A stretch of 64,000 bases of DNA from Takakia lepidozioides. Taxonomy: Eukaryota > Plantae > Bryophyta. The stretch is from positions 22,506,001 to 22,570,000 of the forward strand of contig CM060734.1 of assembly GCA_030704615.1 (NCBI GenBank), read 5' to 3'. Position numbers and translations under genes: made by a program. Positions within the stretch are counted from its first letter, which is position 1, and each line of letters opens with the position of its first letter. The notes beneath the pieces are model-generated. The model was not told where the DNA came from and did no database searches. It was given only the letters and a program-made list of their open reading frames with translations. This document shows positions 4,257 through 43,520 of the stretch, piece after piece.

Positions 4257-4489
4257 TACTATTGAGGGAAAGGGAAAATGCTGAAAGCAGGCGGTTCACA
4301 ACCACCACAGAAAGAGACATTGCCATGGGCAATGAACAACGTGCCAGCTCGCTCTCCCTCTCTTAGTGCTCACTTTGCTCACACAGCTTCTCTCTCTCAC
4401 GTTTTGCCACAGCCACTTTGTAATTCTCAATTCCAATATGCAATGTCGTGATCTCTTCTCTACTTCCCTGCTCTGCCCCACACTTGTTC

Positions 4490-5017
4490 AAAGCACCCCC
4501 CTACTCCACCACCCCCCCCTCTTTCCCCCTGTCGCGATTCAGTGCTGCCATTGCGCGCGTGATGAGCATTCTGGACCACCTGCAATCCATGACGCAAAGT
4601 ACCACGTCCCTACCAACACACCCTGCACTACCCGCTCTTTCAGCCACTACTCCCCACATAACATCCGGTGCAATGCATGGCTTCCCCACTGTTCGTTCCC
4701 CATTAACATACATAACTACACCCCCACGCCCCGCCTCTTCCTGCCACCCTCTCACATCCTTCGCCATCGCCCCAGAGTGAGCAGCTTTCCACTCCCTGCC
4801 CACCCAACCTTGCCCGTCACAATAACCCATCACATGCCCTGCTCCTGGCACGTGGCTGATGATCATATGCGCCACATAACCCCTATTCAAAAATCCCAAT
4901 CATTCCGCCTGGATAGTCCATGGCACCTTAACTGTCATTTCCCCCACTCACGAATGCCCTCATCAACACTCATCCTTACCCCCACTCATCCAGCCACGCA
5001 ACTCATCCCCCCTGACC
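4490..5017 (+). mobile_element. Probable 5' portion of LINE copy 1, separated from the rest by the MULE insertion
   Basis: The same extreme C-rich strand bias resumes at 15796, and a degenerate 9-bp target-site duplication (TSD) links the two sides. The 5' boundary is uncertain. Confidence 0.55.
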
Positions 5018-5847
5018 GAGGTTTACTATTTCATGAGCAGAAACCATGAGCCATGAGCCATGAGCCGCATGAGCCGCATGAGCGGTGAGCCGAAGTCTAA
5101 GACACGCGGATTTCATGAGCGGACTCCTCCAAATTTGGAAATGCGGCAGATTAAACAAGTATTAAAATAATAGTTTTATATTTGACCTTGCCGTTTTTGG
5201 AAGTTACAGATCCTGTAATGCGGCGAAGATATGTCGTCAGTAACAACTCCGCTCATGGTTTTTTAGATCCGCTCACGGAAATGAGTGACCGTGCAACGAG
5301 AAATCCAGTATACCACGGCAAAAGGACGTCGCATACTGGCCTGTATAGAGTATTCCGCGGTTTTACATGCCTTAACATTGGAATGAAGCTGACCCTTTTG
5401 CCGCGACTGAACCAATAGAGTCTGCACAATTCTATCATCTTCCAGTATTCGGCGGGAAAGTTTTGCAAGTGAACTAGGAAATGCGGTGCCGCATTAGGGT
5501 TTGCACGTGCGAAATTTCTCAGCGGTTTGGTGTTGCTGACTGCCGCATCTACCAGTACCTACGACGTTACTTGGAAATGCGGCGCCGCATTTCCTTGCTG
5601 GGGGTCGAATGAGGAAAGCAAAGTTTGGGAGAGCTGAAAAACATGAACCCTCCAACACACAAAAATACATGCACGTGGAAACACGAGTGAATGACATAGT
5701 ATTATCGACGTTCGAGCAAAACAGGTTACTGGTAGGCAAGACATAAGTCGGACCTTTCTGTGGCCAGAGTCAGAGCTACTTGTAGCAGTACAGTTCTACT
5801 ATCCGAAAAGGATGGGCGTACCATTGTGTTGGGACCGCAAGCCAAGG

Positions 5848-8800
5848 TCACTGGTCCCCTGGATCCATATTCAGAAGAGTGTGCACCTCTTGGGGGCTCA
5901 ACCCTGGTGCATGTATGAAGTGATGAGTTGTGGAATTACACCGGAGTCTCTTTAGGTACACGTAGTACATATGCTTGCAAAGGCAGTATGATGCCCCCTT
6001 GTTCGCCATGATCTGAAAGTCGGTGCAATTGCAGGTGGGTAATTCTGAAATGGTGATGGTGTACACCTCATTGCGAACAGCTGAGCCTGCCGTGGCCATC
6101 TGATACACACGCCCAAAGCCTGGTGGGGGCACTTCTGTCGAGCTCTGGATTGTACAGTTCATCCGAAGTGCATTCCCCATCCTCGTCTCATTCACTTTTG
6201 AGGGAGGTCGCCGCCTCTTCGGTTTCCCCCAACGGTGTGTAGGATGCTTAGAGCTGTCGGGTCCCATTGTTCTTGCTCTCACAGGGGTCGGTGGTGGAGG
6301 CTGTGGAAGCGGAAATGGTTGTCTGGGGACGTCAGTGCGCTGCACCATCCGAAATCCTGCGGCGGTAAGGGCGTCGGCCTCAACCTGACTCAGATCGCAG
6401 CCTGGTTCCACCGGCCACACCGGGGGAGCCTCTGGCATTGTTTGTATGCCATACTTGGGCTTTCCATACACGCAAGTCATAATGTCGTGCCTGCAGAACC
6501 AGAACTGGGTGGTTGTCGCCTCCGCAAACTTTGAATCTTCCTGTAAAAGTAGGAGCAGGGACAGCACCATCTGGATTCCTCCTTATCATCTCTAAACAAC
6601 GTTGGCGTGTATCCACTCGAATTGCGGAACACCTGCCTCGAAACGACGGCTTTGTGCGAGCAATTCTCCACTGTGACGCAGACACAGTCGTCTCCACAAT
6701 GGCTTGGCCATACTGCATAACAGCGGGCGGAATCTGGGGCAAGCGAGCGGTGGGAATTTCTCGCACGGAATCCCCGCTTGAAGGCGATGGCGATCTGGAA
6801 TTCCTTGGGCTTCAATTGCTGGAAGACACATTGTGCGGCAACATGACGGGCCCTCGAGGTGCTGTCCGAATGTTCCTGTCGGATCTCCAGGAATCCTCTT
6901 CGCACCCGGGTTCCTCTTCAATCCTCCGCCTCACAGGGCGAGTACGGACGTACCCCTCTAGGTGTTCACCTCTGCGGTGCAGAGGCGTCCCTTTGATCTT
7001 CTCTCGCAATGCTGTCGCCCATTTCAGTGGATTCTTCGACCTCGAAGCTGTTCGCACCAACAATTCCTCCCTATCCGGCCCAAAGCCCCATTGTTTCCCG
7101 CTCATGAACTTGTAGTATGTGGCTTGCTGCATGATTGCTCTGTTGATGTCCTCCGTTGTGGCCGTCATTACGTCCACCAGATGTGCGGCAGAAGACGCTC
7201 GCCAGGAGGAGTGCACTGATTTTGCCATATTCGTGTTCGGCATGTCCGTGTCGGAATCCAAGCACCGCTCCTACAAAGACACAGACAATGGTGAGGAACC
7301 AATGGAAAGGTCCGTAATAGAAAGACAATTGCACGAAAATGACAGCATCATACCTCCCGCATGTACTGTCTGAACTGTCGATACCGGAAATGCCACCACC
7401 CCAACCAGCTGTGCAAGGCTCCCAAATTGGTTGTCTCCACTGCACCTGACGTGTTCCACCAAGCCTCGATGATAGCAAACTTAACCTCCGCGTCATCAAA
7501 TGTGGGTGCATCCTTCCACTCGTACAAAGGACACGGTGTTTAGCCTGGAATGAGCTAGCAACAAATTTGGTAGTGTAGTGGGATAGACTCTACATCCAAT
7601 GGAATCCACAGGATCTCTCTTTCCCCTCCATTGGAACATTGGGGTCCTCACCGTACACACACCGCACCGCTGCCTAGTTGGCCTGAGCGTTGTCTGCCAT
7701 GAATCCCCTGAAATTGGGCTCTGGCAATCCCGCCCTTGCCATCTGCTCGTTTATGCCCTCCCACAGATGCATCTCCGACTGTGTGTCCTCCCCTTTCATC
7801 TCGCTGATTGCAATCGTCATGAGCCTCTTGGAGTGATAGTCATAAACATGCGCACCCATAGTCACCCACTGATGGTTTGTAATTCGCTTGATGTGATCAA
7901 ACATCACCCAAGCATTCGACAGGTTTCCAGTTGTCATGCGAGTGACCAAGTCGACTCCACTCCCAGGCCCACACGTCGACATTTTAAAAATGTAACAACG
8001 ATCGGATTCGCTGCCTTGCCCTGGAAACCTGCTACCTTGGATGTAGTCATATCCAGTCATTCGTTTCACCTCCAGGATTGAGTGCATGTCCGACCCCCGG
8101 CCGAACTCCTGCTTGCAAGATACGATGTGATTCCGCACATTCGGACTACAAACGTGCGAGACGGACTCCAACAAGTCAAGCATCTCCTTTTCGTTCAAGG
8201 GCACTCGGTCTGAACCATCTTCAGACATGATTTTTCCAAGAGCAATCTTGTGGGCTGCCTTCAGCTGAATCTGCTTTGGTCTTGCTCCGGGGCTCAATTT
8301 TACCTCCTCTTTTATGATGTCGTGTGCTTCCTGCACAGCCTCACGCATGTTGCCTCTCGCCAAGGGGTGGCAGTGGACCCCAACGTGTATGCAAGCTCTA
8401 GTCAAGTCCGGGAGCAAATGGATAATGTAATATTGCTTGGCTCTGCACATGGACATGCACGTCGGTGGTTCTTTTGCAATGTGCGCACTTGAAAGTACCC
8501 GCAGGAGCTTGGCTGGAGACAATGAATGGATGATGCGTTGTGCCAGTCCAATCCGTCTCGTTTCTCCGCCCTCCTTTCGAAAGAAAGTGGAAGCAGGCGG
8601 GATTCAGGCACCTCAGCTTCCCCGCACAGAGGACGTATCGTACATGAACACCATCAGCAATTTTCGTGCTACTGGTCTTCGTCACACACCAGGGGTGTCC
8701 GTCATGCTTTCGATCCATGTCTGTTAACATCCCTGAGGCTTTGTTTGAGGAAGTGACAGGTGGAAACTCGAAGATGACATTGCCATCGACTTCGGGAGGC

Positions 8801-9447
8801 AGATACGTTACCTTCCTGACCGGAAATTTGGCATAGTCGAGAGCAGCCAGCTCGGAGCAAGAACCATCGAGGTGATGTTGCCGTAGGAGCTGCACAATGG
8901 ACCGGGTTGGAGTTATGCTCGAGAGTACTTGCGTAGCACCTGCAGAGACGTCCATGTCGGATTTGAACGACCGTGTGGAGGACATGGGGATCTCAATGCA
9001 CTCATCTTCATCGTCGGAAATGTCGAATACGTCCACACGAGAAGCTATGGAGGGTCTTGACGGTCCAGGTCGGGAATGATTATCGTTGCATACCTCTCTG
9101 TCGGCAGTGGCCGCCTGTCGGTTTCCGGACTCCTTTGTGGATGGTGTGGGCAGCGACTGATTCAGAAAGGGAATGGGCATTCCCACAGCTCGGTATAGGA
9201 TGGTGTCTAATGGGGGTACGTGCCATTCGATTCCGCAACCTCCGTCATTACCTAGCACGACAATGGTCTCGTCAATCTGTCCAGGAACATCCTTCCTTTC
9301 TTCTTCCAAGTAAACTGTGCCCGGTTTGAGCTTGAATTTAGAACAAAGGTAAGTTTCAGTCACTCTACAAAGTCCTCCCTCGTTTGGGATCCAGGCTCTC
9401 CCAAGTTGCGGAGGACAGCAAACTATAGCGTAGGAATTCGGAGCCAT
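5848..9447 (-). pseudogene. MULE-type transposase: GCM/WRKY-like zinc DNA-binding domain, DDE core, C-terminal SWIM finger (frameshifts and stops)
   Basis: GCM-like region DGHPW...CAGKLRCLNPAC...CAHC...IHVGVHCH. Core motifs WVMFDH and FMADNAQAN*, then CxxH motif SCGFHW (~7596-7613) and PNTNMAKSVH (expected catalytic E appears as K). SWIM finger YTITISELPTCNCTDF...CKHMYYV. Frameshift near 8480-8520; probable intron near 7265-7370. Confidence 0.85.
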
Positions 9448-9825
9448 CGAACACCACACGAAGTTGGCAAGTGCGAGGTTCAGTATAGCGACAGACGAAG
9501 GCTCACAGTCACTATGCGGAGTCCATCGACGATTGGAAGTCGCACATTGAAGTGGAAAGTATAGTTTCAAGCTACATGCATGAAGGTGGGAGGTGTGATT
9601 CCATAGCCAGTAAGTTAGACAATGATGGCCGAATCGGCGACGAAATAACATCTCCTGACAGTTTCTCCTGAGGGTGGATCCAGCAGTATTCTCGGTACGG
9701 ACAGGAGCGTTCGCACTGACAAGTGCCAGGACTGTTAGTTAAAACGGTCAGACAACCTAGTGTGCTCATCAAGACTGGCCGCAATTCTGTTGTCGGAACA
9801 ATGCAACCCATTCAGGTTCAGCATG

Positions 9826-11436
9826 CGGAAATGAGGTTTCAGATTTCCGTCCGGAGTGATTCTTTCGATTGCTGCTGGACGGAAATACGGAGCCGCATTT
9901 CCGTATTGCGTCTTGGTCATGCACCAGAGCGACGGAAATGCGGCACCGAATTTCCGTCCGGGGGAAACCTTTACACTCTCCAGAACGGAAATGCGGTAAC
10001 GCATTTCCATCCAGCAAGCACGGTATGTGAAGGTGGAACGGAAATGCGGTACCGCATTTCCGTTCTGATTGAGAATCATGAACAAAGGGAAAAGAAATGC
10101 GGCACCGCATTTCCGTCCGAGTCGCACTTTCCGACATTCCATAACGGGAATGCGGCGCCGCATTTCCGTCCGAGTCGCACTTTCCGACATTCCAGAACGG
10201 AAATGCGGCATCGCATTTCCATCCGGGTGAGACCTTCAAACTCTCCAGAACGGAAATGCGGTAACGCATTTCCATCCAGCAAGCACGGTATGTGAAGGTG
10301 GAACGGAAATGCGGTACCGCATTTCCGTTCTGATTGAGAATTATGAACAACGGGAACAGAAATGCGGCACCGCATTTCCGTCCGAGTGGCACTTTCCGAC
10401 ATTCCAGAACGGAAATGCGGCGCCGCATTTCCGTTTTGTATCTGATGCATGGAGCCGAGTGCAATTGCGATCGCTGAGACAGCGCAATTCCGACCGCTTC
10501 AGACATTCAGACTATCCAGAACGGAAATGAGGTACCGCATTTCCGTTCTGACTGTAAATCGTGAACCATCGGAACTGAAATGCGGCAGCGCATTTCCATC
10601 CGAGTCGCACCTCCCTCACAAGCTAGAACGGAAATGCGGCACCGCATTTCCATTCTTATGAAAAATCGTGAAACTTCGGAACTGAAATGTGGTACAGCAT
10701 TTCCGTCGGAGTCGCACCTTCCGACATTCCAAAACGGAAATACGGCGCCGCATTTCCGTTTTGTATGTGAGGCATAGAGCTTTGGAACGAAAATGCGGCA
10801 CCGCATTTCCGCCAGGGTCAGACCTTAATACTCTACAGAACGGTAATGCGGTACCGCATTTCTGTTCTGACTGAAAATCGTCAACAGCAGGAACAGAAAT
10901 GCGTCGCAACTTCCGACATTCTAGAACGGAAATGCGGCGCCCGCATTTCCGTTTTGTATATGAGGCCTTGAGCTGTGGACGGAAATGCGATGCCGCATTT
11001 CCATCCATGTGAGACCTTCAAACTTTCCAGACCGGAAATGCGGCACCGCATTTCCGTTCAGCTGAGACCTCTATACTTTCCCGAACGGAAATGTGGCACG
11101 GCATTTCCGTTCATCAACGAAGGTATGTGAAGGGGGAACGGAAATGCGGTACCGCATTTCCGTTCAGATTGAAAATCATGAACCACGGGAACTGAAATGT
11201 TGTGCCGCATTTCCCTTTTGTATCTCATACATGGAGCTGTGGGACGGAAATGCGGCACCGTATTTCCGTTCAACAACTAAGGTATGTGAAGGTGGAACGG
11301 AAATGCGGTGCCGCATTTTCTTCCAACAAACACGGATGTGTAGCTTCGTGATGGTACTTAACGGAAATACGGCGCCGCATTCGCATTTTCACTCCAACTC
11401 CAAATTTGAACACGTGGAGCAACGGAATTGCGGCAC
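9826..11436. repeat. Palindrome array 1: about 30 copies of ACGGAAATGCGG-YR-CCGCATTTCCGT, mostly at a 53-bp period, with about 5 recurring spacer types
   Basis: Units start near 9879, 9932, 9985, 10038, 10091, 10144, 10197, 10250, 10303 and onward to ~11297. Recurring spacers include ccgagtcgcactttccgacattcc, aaggtatgtgaaggtgga and ctgattgagaatcatgaac. Confidence 0.95.
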
Positions 11437-11707
11437 ATGTCTGCACTCTATCTGATTGAAGTGGCATGAGGCGGCGCGGCCTGACCGTTGGATAATGATG
11501 TTTGTTTTCGGACGACAGTCGTATCCTGATCGATTTGAATTTCGTAATGACGCAAAGTCCACGAGGAGACACTTTCCTCCAACCCTTTCGAACCCAAGTG
11601 TTACATCACCGCCGTTTCATCTGCTTTTGTTGTGTCTCCTCAGTCACCCCTCTCGCGCCCTTTCCATCTGCACTCTTCGCCCCTTTTCCCTGTCTCTTTT
11701 CTTCTTA

Positions 11708-12613
11708 TGCTCGAACTGAGAGGGAGGGAGTGCGTGCACCAGAGAAGAGACATCGTCGCAAGCTCCGAAAATTGTACTTCGGACGTAGGCCAATGCCGAA
11801 GGGAGGAAGCAAATGCGTCTACAGGAGGAGATTGCCATCTCGCAGCATCAGGCCACGCAGGCAACCCAGCCACCAGTGAGAGCTCCGTGCTATCGGGATT
11901 CGCCAGCTGATCGAGCACCGAAACCCGCCTCATTTTTCTTCTGCAATTCTTAGACTGTATGCTAGGAGACTTGACTGCAGAAGATGTTTGCATGCCTAAC
12001 CGGAAAGGTGGACGTGCTGGAGGGATCGCAGGAATCCGAGGAGCCGCAGGCAGAGTCCGTGGAGCTAGCTGCAGCACGCACACCCAGCCGATCCACGAGC
12101 ACGGGTCTTCCTGCCGGTCCTAGCCCTGTGCGTTTCAAGGACGCGGCTTCCAAGGCCAAGTCTTTGCAGTTCAAAGCCCCAGAGAGCGACTAGAAGAATG
12201 TCTCGTTCTTTGCGAGGGCCGACTTCATGACGAGCCGGTGAAGGACTACTCCCTTCCTAGTTATGCAGCTAAACTCGCAAATACAGTGATTAGACGATGT
12301 GAGAATCCCAGTAAAGTATAGCAGATTTTGGAGAGGGCTAGGGAGGACAGAAGGATAAGGAAAGAGTTAGCAAACAGCTGAGGCAGGTAGACGGGGTGCG
12401 AAAGTTCATATGTGATTCAGCGATGAGAGCGATGCAGACAGGGAGGACGACGAGCCAACGGAGGTGAGATGGTCGGTTCTGCAAGGTGAAGATGGGATTT
12501 TCGAAAGCCTGGCCAACGACCAGTCCGCTGGAGATGAGAAAGGCAATGACAAGGTGGAGGCGGAGCAGGACAGTCAAGAACAGGCCGACAGTAGTGATGA
12601 TTTTCAAGATTAA
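11708..12613 (+). pseudogene. Degenerate unknown gene between the two arrays, with an acidic C-terminus
   Basis: Broken ORFs (…EGSQESEEPQAESVE…, …SDESDADREDDEPTE…DSSDDFQD*) with several in-frame stops; no recognisable domain. Confidence 0.35.
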
Positions 12614-12750
12614 TACAATTTTAATGAACTCTCTGTACATTTAAATTCAATTCTAGAGTATAAAAATGGAATTCTCCCCGTCCTTCATGTCCCCTCTCCC
12701 ACGTGCTTCTAAACGACAACATCGTCCAAACCTGGTCCCTCCCAAAATCA

Positions 12751-13757
12751 GAAATGCGGCACCGCATTTCAATGTCTGAACGGAAATGTGGCAACTGCAA
12801 AAACCTCATTTGGAAATGCGGCACCGCATTTCCAAAACCGGGGCAAGAACAAATTTCCGATTCATGGTTTGGACATCAGAAACTGTTCGGACAAACGGAA
12901 ATGCGGTGCCAAATGCAGTTTGCCGATTGGCAGCTCCTTCCATGGATGTAAATCGAAATGCGGAGGTCGAACATGGAAATGCGGTGCCGCATTTACCTTT
13001 TGGAGATGGACATTTTTCCAACTGCAGACCCATCGACGTTCTTGGGCTCCAATTCCATGATGCTAGACGGGAATGCAACACCGCATTCCATTGTCCAATA
13101 AGAAATTTCGATGACGTACATGGAAATGCGGCGCCGCATTTCCAAAAGGGACATCGTTGTTTGCCCAATTCCAGACCCTTTGATGGAAATGCGGCACCGC
13201 ATTCCATCGTCCTATAGAAACTTTCAATTGCCCAAAATGGGAAATGCGGCGCCGCATTTCCAAAACAGACATCGTTGTTTGTCCAATTCCAGACCCGTGT
13301 GGGCATTCCGTCTTGATGGACGGAAATGCGGCACCGCATTCCATTGTCCGATTCGATATTTTGATGACAGACATGGAAATGCGGTGCCGCATTTCCAGAA
13401 CGGACATCGTTGTTTGTCCAATTCCAGACCCTTCGACGGAAATGCGGCACCGCATTCCATTGTGCTCTCCGGAAATGCTGTGCCGCATTTCATTGTCCGG
13501 TACGAAATTTCGATGACAGACATGGAAATGCGGTGCCGCATTTCAAGTATGGACATGGACAAGCATTAGCGACTGGACATGCTTGGATAGTTCAAGGTCG
13601 AATATGGAAATGCGGCGCCGCATTTCAAATTCGAAGTATGGTAATGCCATGTTAGGAAATGAAATGTTGTACAACATTTCCGTTACGACGACAACGGAGG
13701 AAAGGGAGCTGCCAGAAATCGCTTCATGGAGAAAATGGAATGCGGTGGCGAATTTCC
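12751..13757. repeat. Palindrome array 2: about 17 full or partial copies of the same GGAAATGCGG-YR-CCGCATT(T)CC palindrome with a different spacer set
   Basis: Copies near 12751, 12812, 12975, 13069, 13122, 13185, 13240, 13322, 13375, 13438, 13471, 13524 and 13606. Spacer gacatcgttgtttg.ccaattccagaccc recurs. Confidence 0.92.
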
Positions 13758-14033
13758 GAGCTTCGGCGTATACATGTTTCCTACAACTCATACTTGGATT
13801 TTCTTCACCTCAGGACTGTGATATCGCTGACTCTGGTAAATTCATAAGGACAGACACATTGTAGAAATGAGATCTCAAATTGTAAACAGTGGGCCAATTA
13901 CGGCAGTTCTTGAACACGATGAAACACAAGCACACAGAAGTGAGGTACGATGGGTTGTTTTATTGATCGAACACGGTGTCTCACATTTAGTAGCTCCAGA
14001 CAAATCTAAGCCCTTCCTCCTTCTACATGGGTG

Positions 14034-14613
14034 TCACCAAGTCGACGGAACTTCGATAGCCCTCAAAACTAGCTCATTACTGATGCGGCATCTCGAGGTA
14101 AACTGCAATGCGGTCGATCTGGTGCCCTTGGTGGAGCTGACGACAATGTCATACCCATCAATCATACCACCATCATACATCGACAAGGTCACTGTGGGCC
14201 TCCTGTGCCCGTGCGATTCGTCTTCGCAACTCAGCCGAATGTCTCCATACACTGAAAAAGCGGAGTGAACTCCACGAATATAGTTTTCCCCGGTTGCCGT
14301 CCTCCCTGGTCCACTGGCAGCAGTTCCAGCGCCAAAGTGAGGCCGTGCGTGATCTGTCTGGCATCCCATTCCACCTTGGTATATCGAGGTCAACAATTTT
14401 CAGGACCCACGGACCGCATTGACCCTCGCCCTCACCTCGCTCAAAGCGGTAATAGCCCTCCAGATACTCCATTGCGCGCAAAGACTCCCGCTTGATTCCA
14501 GATGCGTCTGTGAAAAGTGAAAGCCAGACAATGATGTCTCCTGATTGTGGTTTGAACATAGCATAATCGTGGCCATGATAAGGGCAGTCAGCAGGATTTC
14601 GGCGGCACGGCAT
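14034..14613 (-). pseudogene. Cargo gene copy A (unknown ~190-aa protein; one frameshift near 14295)
   Basis: MPCRRNPADCPY...SGDIIVW...WRWNCCQWT then GENY...YGDIRL...YDGGMIDGYDIVV...LQFT aligns end to end with 15170-15727. Confidence 0.8.
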
Positions 14614-14871
14614 CCCTGAAAAAGAGTAGCGCAGTACGCTCAATGACAGCAGCTCCCGGATGGAAGAGGTAGCAGCGCGGTGGCTGGAAGAAATTCAAGC
14701 AAACGCTGCAATTCGTCACAAATACTCCAGGGCACATTTAAATTTCCCCCCTACAGGAACCTGCAGGGATGAAGATTGGCTCATCCATGGATGTAGCCGA
14801 TTCAGTTTCCTTCCCTGCCATGCAAACTATGGGCAGTAAGTGCCAGGTGGGCCTATAGCCACTCGAGACGA

Positions 14872-14934
14872 CGAAGTCCATCCCCCCTTCGATGTAAATG
14901 TGGCGCCGAATTTCCATCCGGGGGATGGACTTCG
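14872..14934. promoter_or_regulatory. 63-bp inverted repeat centred on a degenerate array palindrome, between the divergent cargo genes
   Basis: Arms cgaagtccatccccc…gggggatggacttcg enclose taaatgtggcgccgaatttc. A regulatory role is inferred from position only. Confidence 0.5.
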
Positions 14935-15169
14935 GTGGCAGATTTCAAACTATACCCCGTGGATGAGAAAGAGGTATCGGTTCATCCACCGCTGGCTTGT
15001 TGAACACGTTACACGATGATTGGTGGGTACTTGTGACCCAGATGGTCCATTATTGGAGCCCGCACTGCTCTTCCGCTTCTCATCATTTCGAAAATCTAAG
15101 GGCTTCGTTGCTGTCCGCAAGGTGATTTTCATCGGCATCAAACACGTCCTCAGGTCCTCCTTTGCAGGG

Positions 15170-15727
15170 ATGCCGTGCTTCCGGAACCGGGACGACTGCC
15201 CTTATGGAGGCATCGATTATGCAATGTATTCGGCCACATCGGGAGACATCGTTATCTGGTACACAGATTACACAGAAGATACTGGTTCGAATGTGGAAAC
15301 ATTGTTCGCTTTTGAGTATCTCCTAGGCCAGTACGCCTTCGAGCGGGGTGACGATCTTGGTCTGAGGAGTCCGTGGCTCCTGCGCATCATTGATTCCGAT
15401 TTTCCTAGCTACGACGGGCACCCATGCAGAAGAATGCGCACTGCTATGCTGTTGCGGTGGAACTGCTGCCAGTGGACGTGGGTGGACTCCATCGGAGAGA
15501 CTTATACTCCTGAAGGAGTGCGCTCATCTTCTCCATTGTATGGGGACATTCGCATTGGTGTGGACGGCGAAAACGTGAAGCTTTCCATATTCGATGGTGG
15601 TATGATTGAAGGGCAGGACATTGTGGTGAACATCAACAGGGGCGGTACAACGGCTGCAATCCAGTTTACCTGGAGGAGCCCGAAGACTCATGAGCTATTC
15701 CCGCGGACACTCATTTCCGGAAAATAG
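15170..15727 (+). CDS. Cargo gene copy B, intact 185-aa protein of unknown function
   Basis: Open frame MPCFRNRDDCPY…FTWRSPKTHELFPRTLISGK* with two diverged homologs in the window. The ATG is preceded by tttgcag|gg, like copy A (ttttcag|gg), suggesting an upstream intron. Confidence 0.8.
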   Translation: MPCFRNRDDCPYGGIDYAMYSATSGDIVIWYTDYTEDTGSNVETLFAFEYLLGQYAFERGDDLGLRSPWLLRIIDSDFPSYDGHPCRRMRTAMLLRWNCCQWTWVDSIGETYTPEGVRSSSPLYGDIRIGVDGENVKLSIFDGGMIEGQDIVVNINRGGTTAAIQFTWRSPKTHELFPRTLISGK

Positions 15728-16203
15728 TCCTGCTCATGTTTTTTTCGACACTTACGACTCTGCTCATGGCTCATGGCTCATGAAATAGCAGCCCCCCCTT
15801 GGCCCTCACCCTACTTCCATCCAGATCCCACCCATACCACCCTACAGCCGCCTACTCTACCCTGCCCCCCTAGCCACCATCCTCCTCTAACACCCTCCCC
15901 TTTCCCGTCCACCCGCCCCACCAGCCACCTCCCCACCCCCGGATCCCAACCCCCAAGCGCTTACCTTGGGCTCTTATACATACCTCCTCCACCCACTCAA
16001 TCTCTTCCCAACACTCCACCCCCTTTCCAATCCACCACACCATTACACTAATTATCCAGCAGCTCTTTAAACCCCCGCCAGCCACTCTTAAACCCCACCA
16101 TGGATCCCAAACCCCACCCTCCATGTACTCCCCCCGAGGTCGATATCCCCTAGATAAGTCAAAACACTTTTATCATCACCCCCCCAAACCAAACAACCTA
16201 TAC

Positions 16204-16266
16204 ATGGACATCTGCCTGACCCTCCAACTTCTCCGCTGTGGGGACATACATCCAAATCCCGGACCT
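16204..16266 (+). other. 2A-like (StopGo) peptide motif upstream of the LINE APE domain
   Basis: MDICLTLQLLRCGDIHPNPGP compared with the consensus D(V/I)ExNPGP; His replaces Glu. Confidence 0.6.
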
Positions 16267-19200
16267 TCTACCCTTAAGGAAATCATCAGCGAGTCCCCCA
16301 TCGATGCACAATACAGATATGCATTATACTTCCAGCCAAACACCATGTCGCTAATGCATAACTATCGACATATCACCAACCACTTTGCTCCCTTCTTCCC
16401 CCGCGACCCATCCACACACCACCCACCAATAGCCCATGTTACAACCTTTGGACTCCCCACTAATCTTTGCCAGCGCTATCTAAAACCCTACAAAACCTCC
16501 AAGCATTTCCACAGTCCCACCTTCTATTTGCTCTCATAATACTCATCTCTCCCTTGCCGGATACATGGAACGGCTTTCTTCACTCCCACTCTTCATCCCT
16601 CCTCCATCCTTTTCTTTCACAACTACAAGACCTACCCCCGCACCCCCATAACTACTTAGCACTGCCGCACCCCCTACACATCATCCATTCCGAGGGCTTT
16701 ATGAATTGTACCTGGGTGGGACCGCAGAAGCCACCACCCCCCTTCCGAGCTTCTCCCCATCCTAGCCACCTAACCCACCCCCACCCCCCCCTATCACTAC
16801 CCACTCCGCCTCACCAGCCTCTCTGCCCACCACTAGCAGTAGCTCCCTTAATATCACCTCCTGGAACGTAGGCTCCCTAGCTCCCAGTATACAGAGCCTC
16901 ATCCACCTCATCACTGACTCCCGCCCCCACATCATCCTACTACAAGAAACCAAACTGCATACCAGTAACACTAATAGCTCATACATTAACAAACTTCTCC
17001 CGGACTACTACTTGTTATACAACAACCCACTCATTGCGCCACAGTGCCTCCTCAGGTGCTCAACACCTTATAAACCCACAAGAGGTGGGGTGGCATTTGG
17101 CATCCTGCACTCGCACCACTCCCCTAGCTCCACCACTAAAGATAACCGTACCCATCCATCTTCGCTCCCACCTCCAAATCCTACACCTTCACCCCCCGGC
17201 CCTTTGCCCTATTCTACTCATTCATCTCTACATGCCATCCCACACCGAGGACCTCTCATCCATCCCTGAAATTCTCAGTACCATATCCGCGGTACTTACT
17301 CACCCCACACATCAACATGACCACGTCATAATGGCCGGGGACTTCAACATAGATGTTGCACTCCCAGGGCACACTTTCAATGGCACACACCTACCACCAT
17401 CCCAAGCTGACCGAGACTGGGCCCAATTCACCTCCCATCATCACCTCGCATATATCACCTCAGACCACCATTATTCTAGAGGCCTCAATTATTCCTCACT
17501 AAGCCTCATTGATGAAGTCTACTCACGTACCAGCGAGGCCATCCCTCCTCACTTGCAAAGCCATGTACATATTGATAGCCTATGTAATTCCGACCACTAC
17601 CCAATCTCCCTTTCCCTCCCACCATCACTCATCCCTTTCGACCAGTTCCTGTCACGCAGGCACCACCCTTTCAACCACGTCTCCTCTCCCCTCTACCCTA
17701 TAGTAATATAGCCGCATTCAAATCCCATTTTCACCTAGCCGCCTCCGCCTTAACACTCACCCTCTCGCACACCCTATCCAACTCGAACCTTTCCCAACAC
17801 CCGGAAACTATGTGGTTTGCAGCTGAACGTACCCTCACATCCATCCTACAACTCATGACCATCAGCGTGCTCGCCACTTGCTCTGCTCCCCCGGAACTCC
17901 CTCAAACCCCCCGTTCACAACAAAACGGGGGCTACCTTACACACACTCAAAAACGCGAGTGGACCTCCCATCTCAACACATACCACACCATACGTCGCGC
18001 CCTCACGATTATCCCTAGCACACCCACCACCACCCCACTCAACAACTGGTCCACCGATCGCCATATCTTGTGCTTAACGCTATCCCCCTCTGCCAACCAC
18101 TTCTACCCCCGCCGTCCGACCCCACAGCCATACCCAGTTGGATTGCTACCCTAGCCAAAATCGGTAGGGATGCACAGAAGGCCGCATATAACATCACCAA
18201 ACAAAAAGCCACTGCCAATCACAAGAAATTCGTCTCATCCTTCGGGAAACTTTTACGTGATCACCCTAAGCCCGCCCACAAAGCCATCTTCAACCCTGCC
18301 CTCAACCCCCCTATCGACTGCCTCAGACACCGACATGGCCACCTCATAAACCAACCGGACGATATTAAGAATGAAATTTGGGCGCAAGCCTCAGCCTCCT
18401 ACACACCCACAATCAAGCACTGCCTCTACAAACATACTAACGACTGCTTATGCAGCGTCAAACACTACCCTTGGCATGACATCGACGGATTCTCCTTAGA
18501 TAAACATGGGGCCCCTGAGGATACCATCCTCTTGTTCTTCACCATAGCTATTTACGACTCATGTCTCAAATCCCCATCCAAATCCAAAGCCCCCGGTCCC
18601 GATCTCATCCCCAATGCCATACTCCAAGCTCTAGATCCTCATCTTCACTCCCTCTTATTCAATTTTTTCCACCTCTGTTATCGCCTACGACGTATTCCTC
18701 CATCTTGGAAACATAGCCGTACTATCATTCTCTACAAAAAAGGGGACCCCACAGATCTCGGTAACTACTGCCCCATAGCTTTAGCCAACACCATATACAA
18801 ATTCTTCACTAGTACGCTAACCACAATGCTCTCCTGCTATGGAGAGCTGCACCGCATTCTTAGTGACCCCCAAGAAGGCTTCCGTGCCACTCGTAGTACC
18901 ACTCGCCAAATACAATATGTCCTATCCGCACTCGAAGACGCCAAACTCACTAAACATGACATCTATCTCCTCTACATTGACTTTAAAAATGCCGTTGGAT
19001 CTCTTGACCACGCCCGACTTCTCGCCATTATGACGGACCTGGGCTATCCCACTGACGCTATACAACTCATCGGCAACATCTATACCGACAGCTCCACAGA
19101 ATATTCTGGCTCATACTACGGTTCCACTCCCCCTATCCCAATTTTGCGAGGCACTATCCAAGGAGATACCCTCAGCCCTTGCCTGTTCATCATCTTCCTA

Positions 19201-19542
19201 GAGCCCCTTCTTAGATGGATCGACCGAGGTAAGATAGGCTACTGCTATAAAACCTCTAACAATACCATCTCTGCGGCGGCCTACGCAGACGACCTTGCCA
19301 TCCTCGCCCACACCCCTCAACATATCAACCGACAAGCAGACAAACTATTTAGATTTAATCAATGGTCTGGCATGGAGCTCATCCTCCACAAATGTGCTGT
19401 CACCGCAGCTACCCATCATAGCAAACTCACCAAAGCCACGACAGCCTCACACTGCAAATTGTATATCCACTACCAAAACAAAAATTTCCCCTTCTTAGGC
19501 CCTGACAAACCCTACACCTACCTAGGCATACAACTAGTCCCC

Positions 19543-19639
19543 TCCCTATAGGGCCCACCCCCGAAAGGGGGCAGTAGCCAAAAGGTGAAGTGGCTCTTAG
19601 TTATGCCGGCTTCGGCCGGAGTCTTCTCTCTCTTTCTCT
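19543..19639 (+). mobile_element. 97-bp highly structured insertion (SINE-like or 5'-truncated retroposon) in the LINE RT region
   Basis: Exact 9-bp duplication ctagtcccc (19534-19542 and 19640-19648). Removing it restores QLVPTFTWHLQ, matching QLVPSITWHIQ in LINE copy 3. It has a TC-rich tail and four hairpins. Confidence 0.8.
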
Positions 19640-22600
19640 CTAGTCCCCACCTTTACTTGGCACCTACAAAAATCCACTACAATCGCTAAATTGACTGACA
19701 GAAGTACGACCCTCCTCAAATCCCCGGTATCCATCCGTCCCAAACTCTCCCTCATTCAAACCGTACTCAAGCCACAAGTCCAATACTCTTTCCACGCAGC
19801 CCCCTTCTCTCTCCCAGATCTCAAATTAATTGACAAACACTTCATCCAGCTCACTAAACGCATTTGCGGCCTACCCACCAGCACCCCCAATGCTCTTACC
19901 CAACTCCCCACCGACAACTTTGGCATAGGTACTATCCCGCTACTTACCTCCTATGCCCGCACCCTGGGCAAGCAACTTCAAGAAGCCCTCAATGACCCTG
20001 GCCGGCTAGGCCTTATCTATAGAGGTCTCCTTCAATTCCTGGCTACCAAATATAACGGCCTCCACTCCCTACCCACCCTCCACCCCCAATCTTGCCTCCA
20101 CTCTCCTACCACTAGAACCCTCTACATCCTCCGACAAATGAACATTAGCATACAAACCGATCTACCCGGCTACCCAACACCATCTCACCTCTTGAACAAG
20201 CCTGGCTTGCCAGCCCACTCCTCTCCGCACTTGAAGAACGACATTCCCGCCAGAAGACGACCATACTTGCCTACTTTAAACTCCGACACATCACGACTCT
20301 CATCCAACTCACCACAGCCTCTGGCTGCAAACTTCTCTCACCCCGAGAATTCACTCTCAAATACTCCAAAGCAATTGTTAAGACATGCCGGTTTTTGTCC
20401 ATCCTTCAGTCCAAGTCCGACGGGGAGGATCGGATGGACCAAGACGATACAATACGGGTAATCGTTACCAAAGGCGACGAGATGACTATAGAGGTCATGA
20501 AAGAAACTCAAATTTCCCTGTCAAGAACCTCACACGTACAGGCAGAATCAGGAAAGATAGTACAGTGCATTTTTAAGCTTCTACCTTGGAAGCTGCCTGT
20601 AATAAATGGATTGATGTCGACCATGATACTATAGGCTCACTTCCAGCACTCTACACACATAAGCTGCTGCTCCATCAGGTTGGTCTCTCTTGCTCAATCT
20701 TTCCTAGTCTTTTTTTACTGATATAAAGGGGATGCAGGGAAGATCGCCAGCAAGCCCAGGCAAACACGGTATTAATCAGCTGGCCATCTCTCTCATTAAA
20801 GACAGTGGACCCAGGCTAACATTTGATTCTTTATGCAAAAGAGAGACTCCACCTATACCCATAATTTGTTTTCAGCTGTGTTTAGCTGCATCCATCCTTG
20901 CCAATTGGAAAGTGAATGGGCTTCCCAAATTGGAGCCTGGTACAGATTAATGTGGTAGAATAATATGCATTGAATAAATCCCCACCACCACCATAAACAA
21001 AACCACCCGCTTACCCAGTCGCCATAAGCTCGGTTCAGTCTGGTCGGGATTCTCAAACAGGTAGGTATTTAGAGGCAGAGAATTACTCATCTGAAGACTG
21101 CAGCCAAGTCCGCTCTGAGCAAAAGCAGCCTGCACTTGCCTTGTACCAGAGATTACCTTAACTCAGCTTTTGATAGACAGGAGCTGCCACTATTCCACTA
21201 AGCAAATACAATATAGCTCCGAGTGTCAGGAGTAGGAGTTGAGACAATTGACGCCTGACGGACTTCAATTCAACTCAGTTTTGCCAATCGACAAGGACCA
21301 AGGAATCAATGTCCTTGCTGTGCTCACAAGTGCTCCCTTGCTGTGATATTTGTAGCCTAATATGGATGGATGATAAATTACGGATGAGAAATTATGGGCC
21401 ACACCACCTCCTTTTGAGTTGTAGCGATGGCGGGGCCGGGGAAGAGCTCTGGCAGGGAAGAGCTCTTCCGGGGATGAGAGAAGAAGAATCATTAGCAGGT
21501 GTTGTGGAAAGAATGGATGACAGAAGAAGAAGCTTTAGCAGGTGTTGTGGAAAGAACTACAGGGTGTATAAGTTTGTGTGACAAAAGGAAGTTGCATCTT
21601 ACATCAACGATGGTCTCCAATGCCTCTGGGCCTCCAGTGCGACGGTCTCCATATGGCAGACCTCCTCAGATCCGGAGCTCTTCAAGAACCTTACGCTGCC
21701 AGCTCCCTCGCACGCCATCAACCACAGATGCTGGAGTCCCTCCAACAACATCATCGGATGTGCCAGCTCCTCCAGCAACGCCATTAGATCCAGCTCCAGG
21801 TGAGTAGGTGTGTAGGTTATGTTGAGTTGAAGCGTCACACTAACAGCTTTGTCACGAGTAGATCTAGGGTAAGCGATTATGAGTAGCAGTTACTTACCGA
21901 AGAACTCAAGAGACACATGATAGCGTTCAACTGACATCAGTGGCATGAACATGGTGATAGCACTCACTCAAGTATGATGTATATGGTCTTCCAAGACAGA
22001 TGCTTCTTGTAATACAAGCTCACTAGCCTAGGTTGTTGATCTCTGGTCGTTCTTTGTTTTATCTATTCTCCTTTTCCTGGAGTGCTGTGTGATTTCTACA
22101 GGTTACTCTTCCAAATGTGGCCACAGACCACATCAGAATTGCTAGAATTAATGCAAGATTGTTGTTAGACAACTAGGTGATTCATATTGATCACTAACAC
22201 ATTTCATGTTCACTTAGAGCATGTACCAGAAGGGACTCTCTCTGCATCTGAGAGGATCCTCCTCCAAAAATTGAGGAAAGAGACCAGAGAATAGGCCATG
22301 CAGATCAGCAAGCTAACCGACCTTCTTGGCGTGTCAATAAAAGAGAACCAAGCAACCCTACCCTGCACTCAGGTAGATATTCATGTGAAGAATTTGTTTC
22401 ATGTGCTCTCAGCTCTTTTAGAGAGTTAATGAATTGTTGTAGTGCAAGTCCAATTAACTTGTGTTTAAACTAGTCTCTTGTTGATTTTGCAGAAGAAGTT
22501 ACCCAAGATCGCTCGGTCACTTATGCTTGGCCATAATGCAGCTGTTTGCAAGATGCACCCCTCCCATCAAGTCATCAAAAAGAGCATCAATTTCAGGGTT

Positions 22601-37078: not shown

Positions 37079-39623
37079 CCATGGCCGCTCATGGCAGTTT
37101 AGCCATTTCTCCAAGGGGTTTAGCCACACCAAGCTAGGGTTTGTATCTCCTTGAACTCTAGGCTTCCTTGCACCGAGCTATGGCGGCTGTGAAGAAATCA
37201 ACAAGGTATTCTTGCTCTCTTCGACTCCCACACACCACCAATATTAGCTCTAAGTCATGAGGAAGATGCTTGCCTCAATCCAAGCCCTCTTTCTCACTTA
37301 AACTCCCCGAACACGCCACTCAAGACCGTGATAAGCAACCATGCCTTGCTGGTTTCCAGCCCTTGTAAGCACTAATTCATGCGCTCTCCTGGGCCATAAC
37401 ATGTATCTTAGAGCCTATTCAGCCCCCTACACCTGCCACTTTGAAAAGAGCCATGCTCTATCTAGGCTTGAAGTTGGAACCCCAACTCAAAACATGCTCT
37501 ACAAGTGCCGGACTGTCACCTAAGAGCAAATCAGCCCCTTACCTTCCCTTCTAGCTCTCCAAAGCTTAAAGATGGCGGCCTAACTAGGCTGAATGCATGC
37601 TCCACACATGCACTACTCCCACATAAGAGAAATCAGCCCTTCCCTTTTCCTTGCTTGCTCTCCAAGCTTGAAGATAAAAGCTTCAATGGGCTGAATGCAT
37701 GCTCCACACATGCATCCCTTTCACACAAGAGGTAATATGAGCCCCTATCTTGGCTCCTTGGCTCCTTGATGCTCTCTAAAACAAGACTAAGCACTCCATA
37801 GCCTTTGCCAAGCTCCTGAAACCCTAAGGCTTACATTTCCAGCCACAAGACACTCCTCTTGTGGTGCAAGAGCTCTTCTTCGAAGCTATGAAATCCTAGG
37901 TGCACATTCCATGGCCTTGCCGCACCTCTTAGCTCATGTTCCAGCCCTGCTCTTGTCATGGCAAGAGCCCTCTCAATGCTGAAGCTCGAGATTGAAACCC
38001 AATCTCAACATACTCCACAAAGTGCACGGATTTGCCCAAAGCCAAATCAGCCCTCTAGCTTGGTCTTTTAATCCTTCGCACAATGAAAGCTCACATTCCC
38101 AAGGCCAGTTCTCAGCCACTATAACTTGCTCTTGACTGATCCTCTTCCCAATCGTGCTTGCTCATCCCTGCTCATGCATGTACACAATCTGAAACCATCA
38201 AGGTGCTCTGGAATTACCTGCAGCACGGTGCTTTCGTCTCTGAAGCTGAAGATCGAATGCCAAGGTCCACCTTACTCGTAACGAGCATCGCCTCCGCTTC
38301 TAACAACCAAAAGCTCCATGGTGCTCTTTGCATACCAACCTGATTTCTCTCATTTTCATGCAAAAACCACAAGTGCTACAACTAGCTCGTATCTGGCACT
38401 AACAGATACGAGCTCATCTTTCTTGAGTGATAAACATGAAGAATACAAGCTCTCTCGAGCTCACAAACTTGCACATGAAACATCACTCATATATTAAGTC
38501 GAGCCAAGTACACCCCATGCTATGGGGAATCCATACTACGGCGCCATGGCTAGGCGCGGTGAGGCTCAACTCGAGAAAGATGAGCCTCCCGCGCTTGCCA
38601 TGAAGATAACCACTCCAGGGCCTGAAATCTGCCTTGACCCCTGGATTCACACTTGGGCCAATCTCAAATGTCAATATGTAAAAGCTAGCTACTTCCTAGC
38701 TAGTTTCACACTAGTGGTGAAATAACTTGGGGGATGCTAGTCCGTGAGCGGCTCACGTGAGCGGGAAGATGCTCACGCCAGAGGTTGTTGGGGCCCACAT
38801 CCGCGGACGGTGATAACCAGGGGACCTATTCCCGTGGGAACGAGCGAAAATGTAATGCATACCTAGATGTGCAGTTGGATGAATGGTGGATGGATGAAAA
38901 ATATTAGATGGATGGTGGATGGATGAGAAATTTTTAATGGATGGTGGATGGATATTGGTTGGATGTTACATGCATGATGGCTGAGTGTGGGGCGAATGAT
39001 GGATGATATATGCTGGAACACTGGATGAATGACGGAGTGACAAATTTGGAATGGTAGAATTTTCGGACAGTTGATGGATGGACTTATGTTTTGGATGCAT
39101 GAACAATATACGTACATATGTGTAAAGACTGGAAGTATTATGGACCCACAGAGATTGTATGAATGGACTTGCAAGTGAAGAGGAAATTTTTTATGTCCAA
39201 AAATGTCTTATGTAGACTATGTTTTGAAGGGAGGCACGTAGTTGAAGGAAGAGAAGCAATCTCCTCACAGTGGATTCCCTAGATATTCTCAAACAGGTGG
39301 AACCAATCGGAAAATGTCTATGCACTGGAACTTGTGGTAGCACCGGACTCCGACGCACTAATGTCCATAAAGATCCTAGCCCTGCTGTCCACATTTTCTA
39401 CACGATTGAAGCAATCTAGAGGGGGAGAGTCGCAGAGAGTAAACTCCCTAGTGGCAGCCTCCGCATAGCATGGCAACTGTAGGGGGGCATCTGGGCTCGG
39501 AAAAAATTCCGGGTTAGCAAAGAAAGGGATGCTTCTCCTTGTTTCTGGTGTCCTGCAAAGATTCCCAAAGTGGCAAGCCCAGTAAGCAGAAAGACAGGAC
39601 CGCGTTTGTGACAAAAACGAAGG

Positions 39624-42600: not shown

Positions 42601-43520
42601 GTCGTAGTGCACTTTCACCTGCTCCAGGAACTCCGAGCCGAGATCGGGATCTGCAATGCGGATTTGTTTGTCAAACACACTCAGCAGGTTCTTTCTGTGG
42701 TTATCCATCTCAAACCGGATTGCCTCCGCCACCCCCACAACAGACCTCTCCTCCTCTGCGTGAGTGGCGTAGTATTCGGCCTTCGCCTTCAAGCCTGTCT
42801 CCGCTATCTCTTGCTGCAAACAATCCAAAATATATGATCATTTAGTTCACATCCATTGAAAATAGGGAACAAACTAGTCTGAATTTCAATTCGGTTTAAG
42901 TTTCCTTACCGTGTACATGTAGTCAAGAAATGCCTCTCTTGTCAGGCTATACCAGGTGACGAGCTTCTTCTCCCTGCATCTCTTCATTTGACTTGTACTC
43001 AACACGTTCGCAAACGATTCCAGAGGCATCATACCGATCTTCTGGATCCGAAAAAGAGTGTGGCAGAGGTTGGTTGTTACGTGCGAGGTTTCGTTTGATT
43101 TGCATTGAACAGTCACTTTTCCAATTAAGAGAAAAACAACCACAAACATAGCAATGCAATCACACAATGCACAACAATTTCGGAAAACTTACTTGTTGAT
43201 GTCGTGCATGGCAGTGAGCAGTTGTGTGATTTGTCCTTTGTGATCCAGGACCGTAGAATGAACGCTACAGTGCCAATCCTATTCGTTAGAGTGCAATTCG
43301 GATATGTAGTCCATCCAGGCAAGCAACCGGTGATTGCCATCCCATACAAAAAACATCTTCCCCATGAAAACTTTCGTGGAAGCCTTCTTGGACAATTTGG
43401 CCTCGAACTCCCTTTTAACTTCAAGCCAACATGCATCCCAACCTTCCTCTATCTCTTCTGATACAGGGCACTCTTCGCCCTTCGTGTCAGTGGTGGAAAC
43501 ATAAAACACCGCAGAACCTT
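39624..43520 (-). pseudogene. Multi-exon gene: ParB/Srx-like domain fused to a beta-class N4-C/N6-A DNA methyltransferase fold (5'-truncated, nonsense mutations)
   Basis: ParB-like FFVWDGNHRLLAW (~43324-43348). MTase motif IV region DLVVLDIPDG (~40600-40629), DKFLFDAGALLL, motif X REKSPAFMQTLVETCS, motif I GRVVDFSLGT|GAT (spliced ~39958 to ~39865), motif II GRHFFSMEGD. About 9 exons, mostly with GT-AG boundaries. Confidence 0.8.
41466..41912. repeat. Five copies of the 24-bp palindrome CAACCTTGCGT-YR-ACGCAAGGTTG in one intron
   Basis: Copies at 41466, 41560, 41635, 41793 and 41889, separated by unrelated sequence. Confidence 0.95.

Follow-up and report, generated by a model that had tools for sequence, protein, structure and literature searches.

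Why should a dead transposon keep 46 copies of a CpG-rich palindrome alike while the sequence between them diverges? This question is raised by a locus in the genome of Takakia lepidozioides (Bryophyta). The stretch analyzed here, hereafter the window, comprises 64,000 nucleotides (GenBank assembly GCA_030704615.1, contig CM060734.1, positions 22,506,001 to 22,570,000 of the forward strand; all coordinates below count from its first nucleotide). The element in question is an inactive copy of a Mutator-superfamily DNA transposon, which contains a decayed transposase gene, two arrays of the palindrome and two copies of an orphan gene, referred to here as cargo A and cargo B. A preliminary description of this DNA had recognized a Mutator-like element of this composition and had proposed, by analogy with the VANC proteins of Arabidopsis VANDAL elements, that a protein encoded by the element binds the arrays. 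In our estimation the chances are about even that the palindromes, with arms CGGAAATGCGG, are cis-acting dimeric binding sites for a sequence-specific protein supplied by the transposon family, kept by selection on the transposon lineage.

A palindrome confined, within the window, to one element

The features on which the argument depends are the following.

5018-15795: DNA transposon of 10.8 kb with matching inverted ends, an inactive Mutator-superfamily copy
5477-5498 and 5573-5594: solo palindromes in the left subterminal region
5848-9651, minus strand: decayed Mutator-superfamily transposase in at least five reading-frame pieces
9827-11384: array 1, 28 palindromes at a 53-bp period; the spacers are of about five types and form a higher-order repeat of 265 bp
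12750-13757: array 2, 15 palindromes spaced irregularly at 33-163 bp, with higher-order units of 118/135 bp
14894-14915: degenerate solo palindrome with 3 mismatches, located between the cargo genes

The palindrome, GGAAATGCGG-YR-CCGCATTTCC, is present in 46 copies within the element, where none is expected by chance. The pattern GGAAATGCGGYRCCGCATTTCC has 41 matches in the window at up to three mismatches, all of them within positions 5477-14915 and none expected (100 shuffles); at up to five mismatches there are 46 non-overlapping copies, of which 28 belong to array 1, 15 to array 2 and three are solo. The about 47 copies given in the preliminary description, along with their places and character, are thus confirmed almost to the number. 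The palindrome is also specific to the element, as had been suggested: even its 10-bp half-site occurs only twice in the 64-kb window outside the element, with one mismatch each time. The arrays had further been assigned to two internal non-coding intervals, and they are indeed located there; their surroundings are perhaps not gene-free, given a candidate plus-strand exon that ends at position 12613 (see below).

The two arrays are built differently. Array 1 begins 176 bp upstream of the transposase ATG, and its spacing is exactly 53 bp in 22 of the 27 intervals. When the units are anchored on the palindrome, the palindrome of this array proves to be 30 bp long (GAACGGAAATGCGGYRCCGCATTTCCGTTC, i.e. 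GAACGGAAATGCGG-YR-CCGCATTTCCGTTC). Tandem Repeats Finder reports the 53-bp unit together with higher-order periods of 106, 159, 265 and 325 bp, and the 265-bp higher-order structure is preserved at 94% identity. Array 2 is downstream of cargo A and has flanks unlike those of array 1. The third solo copy is close to the axis of symmetry of the two cargo copies, which are arranged head to head; the distance is about 12-21 bp.

Constraint on the palindrome

Conservation of the palindrome beside divergent spacers, which the preliminary description took as a sign of selection, is clear in both arrays. Pairwise identity of the 22-mer is 0.84 in array 1 and 0.82 in array 2, compared with 0.41-0.46 and 0.34-0.36, respectively, for the flanks. 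The roughly five spacer types are mutually unrelated save for their equal length. Units of different spacer type differ by 19.6% in the palindrome and by 74.4% in the spacer, and units of one type by 14.5% and 29.6%, respectively; because the units of the higher-order repeat are non-independent, these divergence figures are descriptive and are not to be read as p-values. Homogenization of whole units cannot yield conserved palindromes beside unrelated spacers.

The kind of constraint can be read from the changes that did occur. All 34 distinct variants of the 22-mer have the same AAT/ATT core. Changes in the arms of these variants are predominantly one-sided and pair-breaking (52, against 3 that are compensated), and therefore it is the sequence of each arm, rather than its ability to pair, that is kept. 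Such a constraint is what a site recognized by a protein dimer would be expected to show, and it argues against a function as hairpin or cruciform.

A second contrast concerns CpG dinucleotides within the same 22 bp. Of 45 copies, 36 retain the CpG of one arm and 41 that of the other, whereas the central CpG survives in 9 and has been replaced by TG, CA or TA, the products of deamination, in 34. The ratio of observed to expected CpG (o/e) is 0.47-0.52 in the window outside the element, 0.6-1.0 in the element, 0.70 in the array spacers and 1.65 in the palindromes. The preserved arm CpGs may indicate that the arms are selected, or that they are shielded from methylation, or that the center merely needs a pyrimidine-purine step; all three explanations would be compatible with a bound site.

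The transposase as candidate binder

If a protein supplied by the family binds these sites, our first choice would be the N-terminal zinc-finger region of the transposase, acting as its own regulator or as an anti-silencing factor. The 28 sites of array 1, helically phased and immediately upstream of the transposase gene, could then serve as its platform. A ParB-like accessory protein supplied in trans by sister elements would be the second choice, and the orphan cargo protein the least likely one.

Several kinds of evidence point to the Mutator superfamily as the affiliation of the transposase. Transposase and cargo A were searched as separate pieces. The transposase pieces, all on the minus strand (8398-9651, 7677-8603, 7351-7539, 6815-7270 and 5851-6582), align in collinear order with genes from ENA and NCBI contigs that have no interruptions, with about 40% identity in the core; among the database homologs, identity reaches 40% with an E-value of 5e-58. 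Neither the pieces nor their intact relatives match the Pfam MULE family (PF10551) at E-values up to 1-10, no Pfam domain is precomputed for any of the 64 database homologs, and the Pfam match to SWIM is below threshold (E = 1.4). Language-model features of a relative, however, match clusters of PF10551 MULE (0.95; 175 of 256 features), and the top ten matches are to the same family or clan. The alignment contains, in order, the motifs MFDH, FMAD, CQFH and NLSETVHNKW; this order (MFDH/FMAD/CQFH/NLSE) we take to correspond to the D, D, C(2)H, E scheme of Mutator transposases. The present copy retains the aspartate motifs MFDH and FMAD. A C-terminal SWIM motif of the CxCxnCxH type (P.C.C.DF...CKH) is conserved throughout the family and is found in piece 5851-6582, and a conserved N-terminal Cys/His zinc region ends in ...RACIHxGTHxHP. 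Together with the inverted ends, the collinear transposase, the MULE features and the SWIM motif bear out the earlier assignment, and the transposase probably represents a divergent lineage of the Mutator superfamily that is undetected by Pfam. The present copy is evidently dead, judging from its several frame breaks and from the lysine that replaces the glutamate of the family's NLSE motif.

The relatives include four contigs (L001, L003, L004 and L005; ENA ERZ25073694 / ERZ25073677) with near-intact genes of 3.6 kb that have few or no introns. These contigs are AT-richer and eukaryotic, none bears a Pfam annotation, and their Mutator lineage appears to escape the MULE model of Pfam.

Several observations on the placement of sites favor the transposase as the binder. 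Half-sites and two of the solo palindromes are subterminal on the left, and array 1 begins close to the ATG. In the left subterminal region there is an exact half-site, TTGGAAATGCGGC, at 5135 and a weaker one at 5212, and the best matches to the half-site position weight matrix (PWM) outside the arrays are at 5584, 5571, 5135 and 5475. The 7-mer CGGAAAT is found within the subterminal 300 bp of all four ends of this transposon family that the window contains (two of the element itself and two others, described below); outside the arrays it occurs 11 times, and four of these are in the subterminal stretches, which make up about 2% of the sequence.

A number of points weigh against this interpretation, some of them against protein binding as such and some against the transposase. 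The conservation statistics are inflated by the non-independence of the higher-order repeat units, and short-tract conversion could have homogenized the palindromes. Array 2 does not have the 53-bp phasing, and the right end has a weak half-site at best. The CATGAGC repeat, which is common to all four family ends, is a more natural binding site for the transposase than the palindrome. The AlphaFold model of the N-terminal half of a relative (pLDDT 47) is too poor for assignment to a class of DNA-binding domains, and a profile search of the N-terminal region against PDB sequences returned nothing significant. A finger of the WRKY/GCM1 type is a speculative candidate for this region, and ATGCGG resembles the GCM site. 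Finally, the distant transposase relatives on ENA contigs (40% identity) are without arrays, cargo or CATGAGC ends, and therefore the arrays are no intrinsic requirement of the transposase family.

With these points in mind, we propose only tentatively a more specific version of the dimeric-site interpretation. The arrays would be the cis component of a system for self-recognition or anti-silencing with neither ParB nor VANC; a dimer of the transposase, or with less likelihood of the cargo protein, would occupy the 28-site array phased at five helical turns, and the contrast between arm and central CpGs would be the footprint of that occupancy.

Alternative explanations

The alternative that survives best keeps the idea of a bound site and changes the protein. 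The arrays would be targets of an accessory ParB-like (ParB-methyltransferase) protein of sister Mutator elements, the gene for which this copy has lost or never had, and which is supplied in trans. The layout of the arrays is similar to that of plasmid centromeres such as F sopC, and the red-algal protein PAG3, discussed below, provides a precedent. The window itself contains a ParB-gene region (38730-43520), in which a different 24-bp palindrome, CAACCTTGCGT-YR-ACGCAAGGTTG, is present in four copies (41466-41912). This palindrome and that of the element share the inner core TGCG-N-YR-N-CGCA and the CG/TG/CA/TA pattern at the center. However, the outer arms of the two differ, and therefore the ParB gene of the window would not obviously recognize the sites of the element; nor is that gene flanked by ends of this transposon family. 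The possibility that this copy retains a ParB/methyltransferase remnant was considered and rejected: tblastn and tblastx against the rest of the window, including the ParB-gene region, and Pfam searches at E-values up to 10 all came back empty. We regard the ParB alternative as unlikely.

Less likely again, in our judgment, is that the arrays are functionless minisatellites, in which a palindromic seed was spread by slippage or unequal exchange and similarity was maintained through short-tract conversion or reflects recent amplification. Internal tandem repeats are common in DNA transposons, and several properties of these arrays are in keeping with such an origin: array 1 has its 265-bp higher-order structure at 94% identity, array 2 is irregular, and contig joints reveal that array length differs between genomic copies of the family, some of which have shorter arrays. 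This explanation does not account well for unrelated spacer types of exactly equal length, or for a palindrome that is conserved across spacer types, in both arrays and in the solo copies, a pattern with which homogenization of whole units is incompatible. Likewise, it offers little to explain why arm CpGs survive while the central CpG decays within the same 22 bp.

A third alternative returns to the preliminary description, in which the cargo was a possible binder, and makes the orphan protein of the A/B family the partner of the palindrome in a self-contained, VANC-like system. The relevant features are the following.

14034-14643, minus strand: cargo A, the broken copy of the orphan gene, frameshifted near 14290
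15170-15727, plus strand: cargo B, an intact orphan open reading frame (ORF) of 185 amino acids with pI 4.7, ending 68 bp short of the right end
49804-50370: third cargo copy, with two in-frame stops (50182 and 50275)

Two copies of an orphan gene had been reported in the element, and this stands, with copy A broken and copy B intact. The start methionine is kept in all three copies, and in every comparison among them identity is highest at the second codon position and lowest at the third (0.72 at the second, 0.68 at the first and 0.55 at the third for B against A). Because of this pattern, and because the non-coding spacer between cargo A and cargo B can no longer be aligned, the cargo family is judged to have evolved as protein and to be a real coding family. 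In a run guessed to be RNA, one contig of 477 nt spans positions 15104-15580 at 97% identity, which weakly suggests that the cargo is expressed somewhere in the family. The existence of a real coding family with an intact copy B and a probable RNA contig over it, the solo palindrome near the axis between the divergent cargo copies, and the presence of cargo with the same family of ends in a second element (49089-50370), where the third copy lies 700 bp inward of the end at 49089, are what favor the cargo protein as the binder.

Other properties of the cargo make that role quite improbable. Cargo B is acidic, which does not suggest DNA binding, and its AlphaFold model is all-beta without a confident fold (pLDDT 45). 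No homolog of cargo B was found in a word-based search of 5.8 billion clusters or in an exhaustive phmmer search of 1.84 billion representatives at E-values of 0.001 or better, and the cargo has no Pfam family and no protein-atlas match; without a homolog, no DNA-binding ancestry can be claimed. The earlier remark that the cargo resembles neither VANC nor anything else agrees with these results, as database searches with cargo B returned no VANC similarity, although no direct alignment to a VANC sequence was made. The second cargo-bearing element has no palindrome in the part that lies inside the window, and some genomic copies of the family are without cargo A, as revealed by a contig joint between 13948 and 14724.

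Cargo A and cargo B together form an imperfect inverted duplication of 1.7 kb (14034-15727) with its axis at about 14884-14893. The inverted-repeat arms I2, I8 and I14 are centered on the same positions, and fold-back at a palindrome is a possible origin of the duplication.

Least probable of all is that the palindromes act as nucleic-acid structures, either RNA hairpins that give rise to small RNAs or DNA cruciforms. Each unit can form a hairpin of 13 bp (-14.4 kcal/mol, z = -8), but pair-breaking changes far outnumber compensated ones, a search of Rfam returned no match, and the arrays are nearly missing from contigs of runs guessed to be RNA. Dicer substrates, moreover, need longer stems and larger loops than these.

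Relation to known systems of self-recognition

To our knowledge, sequence-specific self-recognition encoded by a transposon has been demonstrated experimentally only in Arabidopsis (VANC, TnpA and AtMu1c), and in red algae it has been inferred. Fixed-period units, each of them an inverted repeat bound by a dimeric protein, are known from the plasmid centromeres F sopC and P1 parS, and in the subterminal regions of En/Spm a 12-bp motif occurs in inverted pairs to which the TnpA protein binds. In contrast to the plasmid centromeres, the arrays described here belong to a eukaryotic transposon without ParB, and unlike the TnpA sites they are internal rather than subterminal.

The closest comparison is with the Arabidopsis elements VANDAL21 and VANDAL6 and their VANC proteins (PMC5735166; PMC10398659), which are likewise members of the Mutator superfamily, carry extra genes and have a family-unique density of a tandemly amplified motif. 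VANC21 binds YAGTATTAY, and such motifs accumulate as dynamic tandem repeats in the non-coding parts of VANDAL21, including the region upstream of the transposase gene; the summary of VANC biology on which the original proposal drew is correct (PMC5735166). The VANDAL motif is 8-9 bp long and oriented, whereas the element described here has a CpG-rich palindrome of 22-30 bp at a fixed period of 53 bp. It also differs from VANDAL elements in having no VANC homolog and in its clear inverted ends with CATGAGC sub-repeats.

The system had been called possibly independent of VANC. It would not be unprecedented, since in the giant transposons of red algae (Plavaka, and a Mutator element in Chondrus) PAG3, a fusion of ParB and a 2OG oxygenase, is encoded beside tandem inverted-repeat arrays, and self-binding has been proposed (10.1101/2025.02.11.637652). 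Red-algal Plavaka elements resemble the present one in having inverted-repeat arrays inside a DNA transposon that adjoin accessory genes, and their PAG1, like the cargo, is of no known function. The element described here differs in being without a ParB, methylase or oxygenase gene, in belonging to the Mutator rather than the EnSpm/Plavaka group, and in its plant host.

A mechanism that requires no accessory protein is known for AtMu1c, the transposase of which alone binds end motifs and hypomethylates and activates cognate copies (10.64898/2026.08.24.746577). By analogy, a Mutator transposase that relieves silencing without accessory proteins is the mechanism that we would favor here. The AtMu1 sites are located in the inverted ends, whereas the present element has a large internal phased array with half-sites near one end.

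The element thus shares the logic of the VANC and PAG3 systems, and with VANDAL also the Mutator frame, but has neither of the defining genes, VANC or ParB. Beyond what these systems have, it possesses a strictly phased array (53 bp, or about five helical turns, in array 1 only) and the orphan cargo. A high-copy Mutator family outside seed plants and without ParB or VANC provides a clean test of a transposase-only system; its short CpG-containing site suits a direct test of methylation-sensitive binding, and the family is suited to the study of co-evolving binding-site arrays and binders among sister families. If the transposase alone is the binder, then large operator-like arrays would have evolved on a transposase-only regulatory circuit, and variants of the palindrome with the TGCG-N-YR-N-CGCA core would define incompatibility groups among sister families in one genome. 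If the arrays are inert, they are still a well-documented higher-order minisatellite within a transposon.

The interval between the arrays

The two arrays are separated by sequence with the following features.

11385-12749: unique interval of 1.3 kb without a recognizable domain
12416-12613, plus strand: candidate terminal exon with an acidic tail (...DSQEQADSSDDFQD), its stop codon at 12611-12613 and an AT-rich stretch after it

No ParB, methyltransferase or SAP domain was found in this interval with Pfam, and it has no similarity to the rest of the window. A SAP-like exon on the minus strand (12174-12005) was considered as a candidate and dropped after no Pfam SAP match was obtained. Contigs of two runs guessed to be RNA overlap positions 12354-12769 and continue into unlike sequence on both sides. 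The candidate exon ending at 12613 may be the final one of a gene arranged divergently to that of the transposase, with array 1 between the two.

Ends and genomic copies of the family

The boundaries of the element, with the regions next to them, are the following.

5009-5017: left target-site duplication, putative, 9 bp, CCCCTGACC (read off the letters)
5018-5120, plus strand: left terminal inverted repeat, with seven CATGAGC sub-repeats after GAGGTTTACTATTTCATGAGC
5135-5594: left subterminal region, with half-sites, CGGAAATGAGTG at 5276 and two solo palindromes
15689-15795, minus strand: right terminal inverted repeat, GGGGCTGCTATTTCATGAGC and CATGAGC repeats, with CGGAAATGAGTG at 15713
15796-15804: right target-site duplication, putative, CCCTTGGCC (read off the letters)

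At both ends the terminal sequence is G(G/A)GGnT(T/G)nCTATTTCATGAGC followed by CATGAGC sub-repeats, and the sequence that bounds the element family is GGGGnTTGCTATTTCATGAGC. The two putative duplications, CCCCTGACC and CCCTTGGCC, match at seven of nine positions, so the duplication is imperfect, and its exact cut is ambiguous because G and C run on across the boundary. Target-site duplications in the Mutator superfamily measure 9-11 bp. The two flanks are parts of a single C-rich tract (4400-5017 and 15796-20500) with a strongly negative GC skew of -0.4 to -0.6, which supports the insertion boundaries. The flanks are in keeping with an insertion that duplicated 9 bp of its target.

The terminal 21 bp are common to the left end, the right end and two further ends in the window, at 634 and 49089. 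The first of these is a solitary family end (634-800) that consists of AGGGGTTGCTATTTCATGAGC and CATGAGC repeats, with CGGAAAT at 729 and a decayed palindrome-like sequence, AATGAAATGCAACATTTTATT, at 782. It has no partner within the window, and its surroundings are CpG-poor (o/e 0.45). The second (49089-50370) has subterminal CCGCTCATGG repeats similar to those at the left end of the main element, and neither a copy of the palindrome nor a partner end is found with it inside the window.

Beyond the window, 5,996 letters of the element (9800-15795) were compared with assembled contigs. More than 24,000 contigs from DNA runs of the source organism matched this interval and every bin of it was covered, and therefore we conclude that the family is very high-copy. 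The array bins have no surplus of depth over the rest of the element in these runs, where summed depth is not to be equated with copy number. The palindrome has no exact match among JGI metagenome contigs; the interval 9800-15795 is also present in a run labeled 'plant metagenome'. A contig from a DNA run links position 14337 to position 15420 with a change of strand, a sign that some elements have undergone inversion between cargo A and cargo B.

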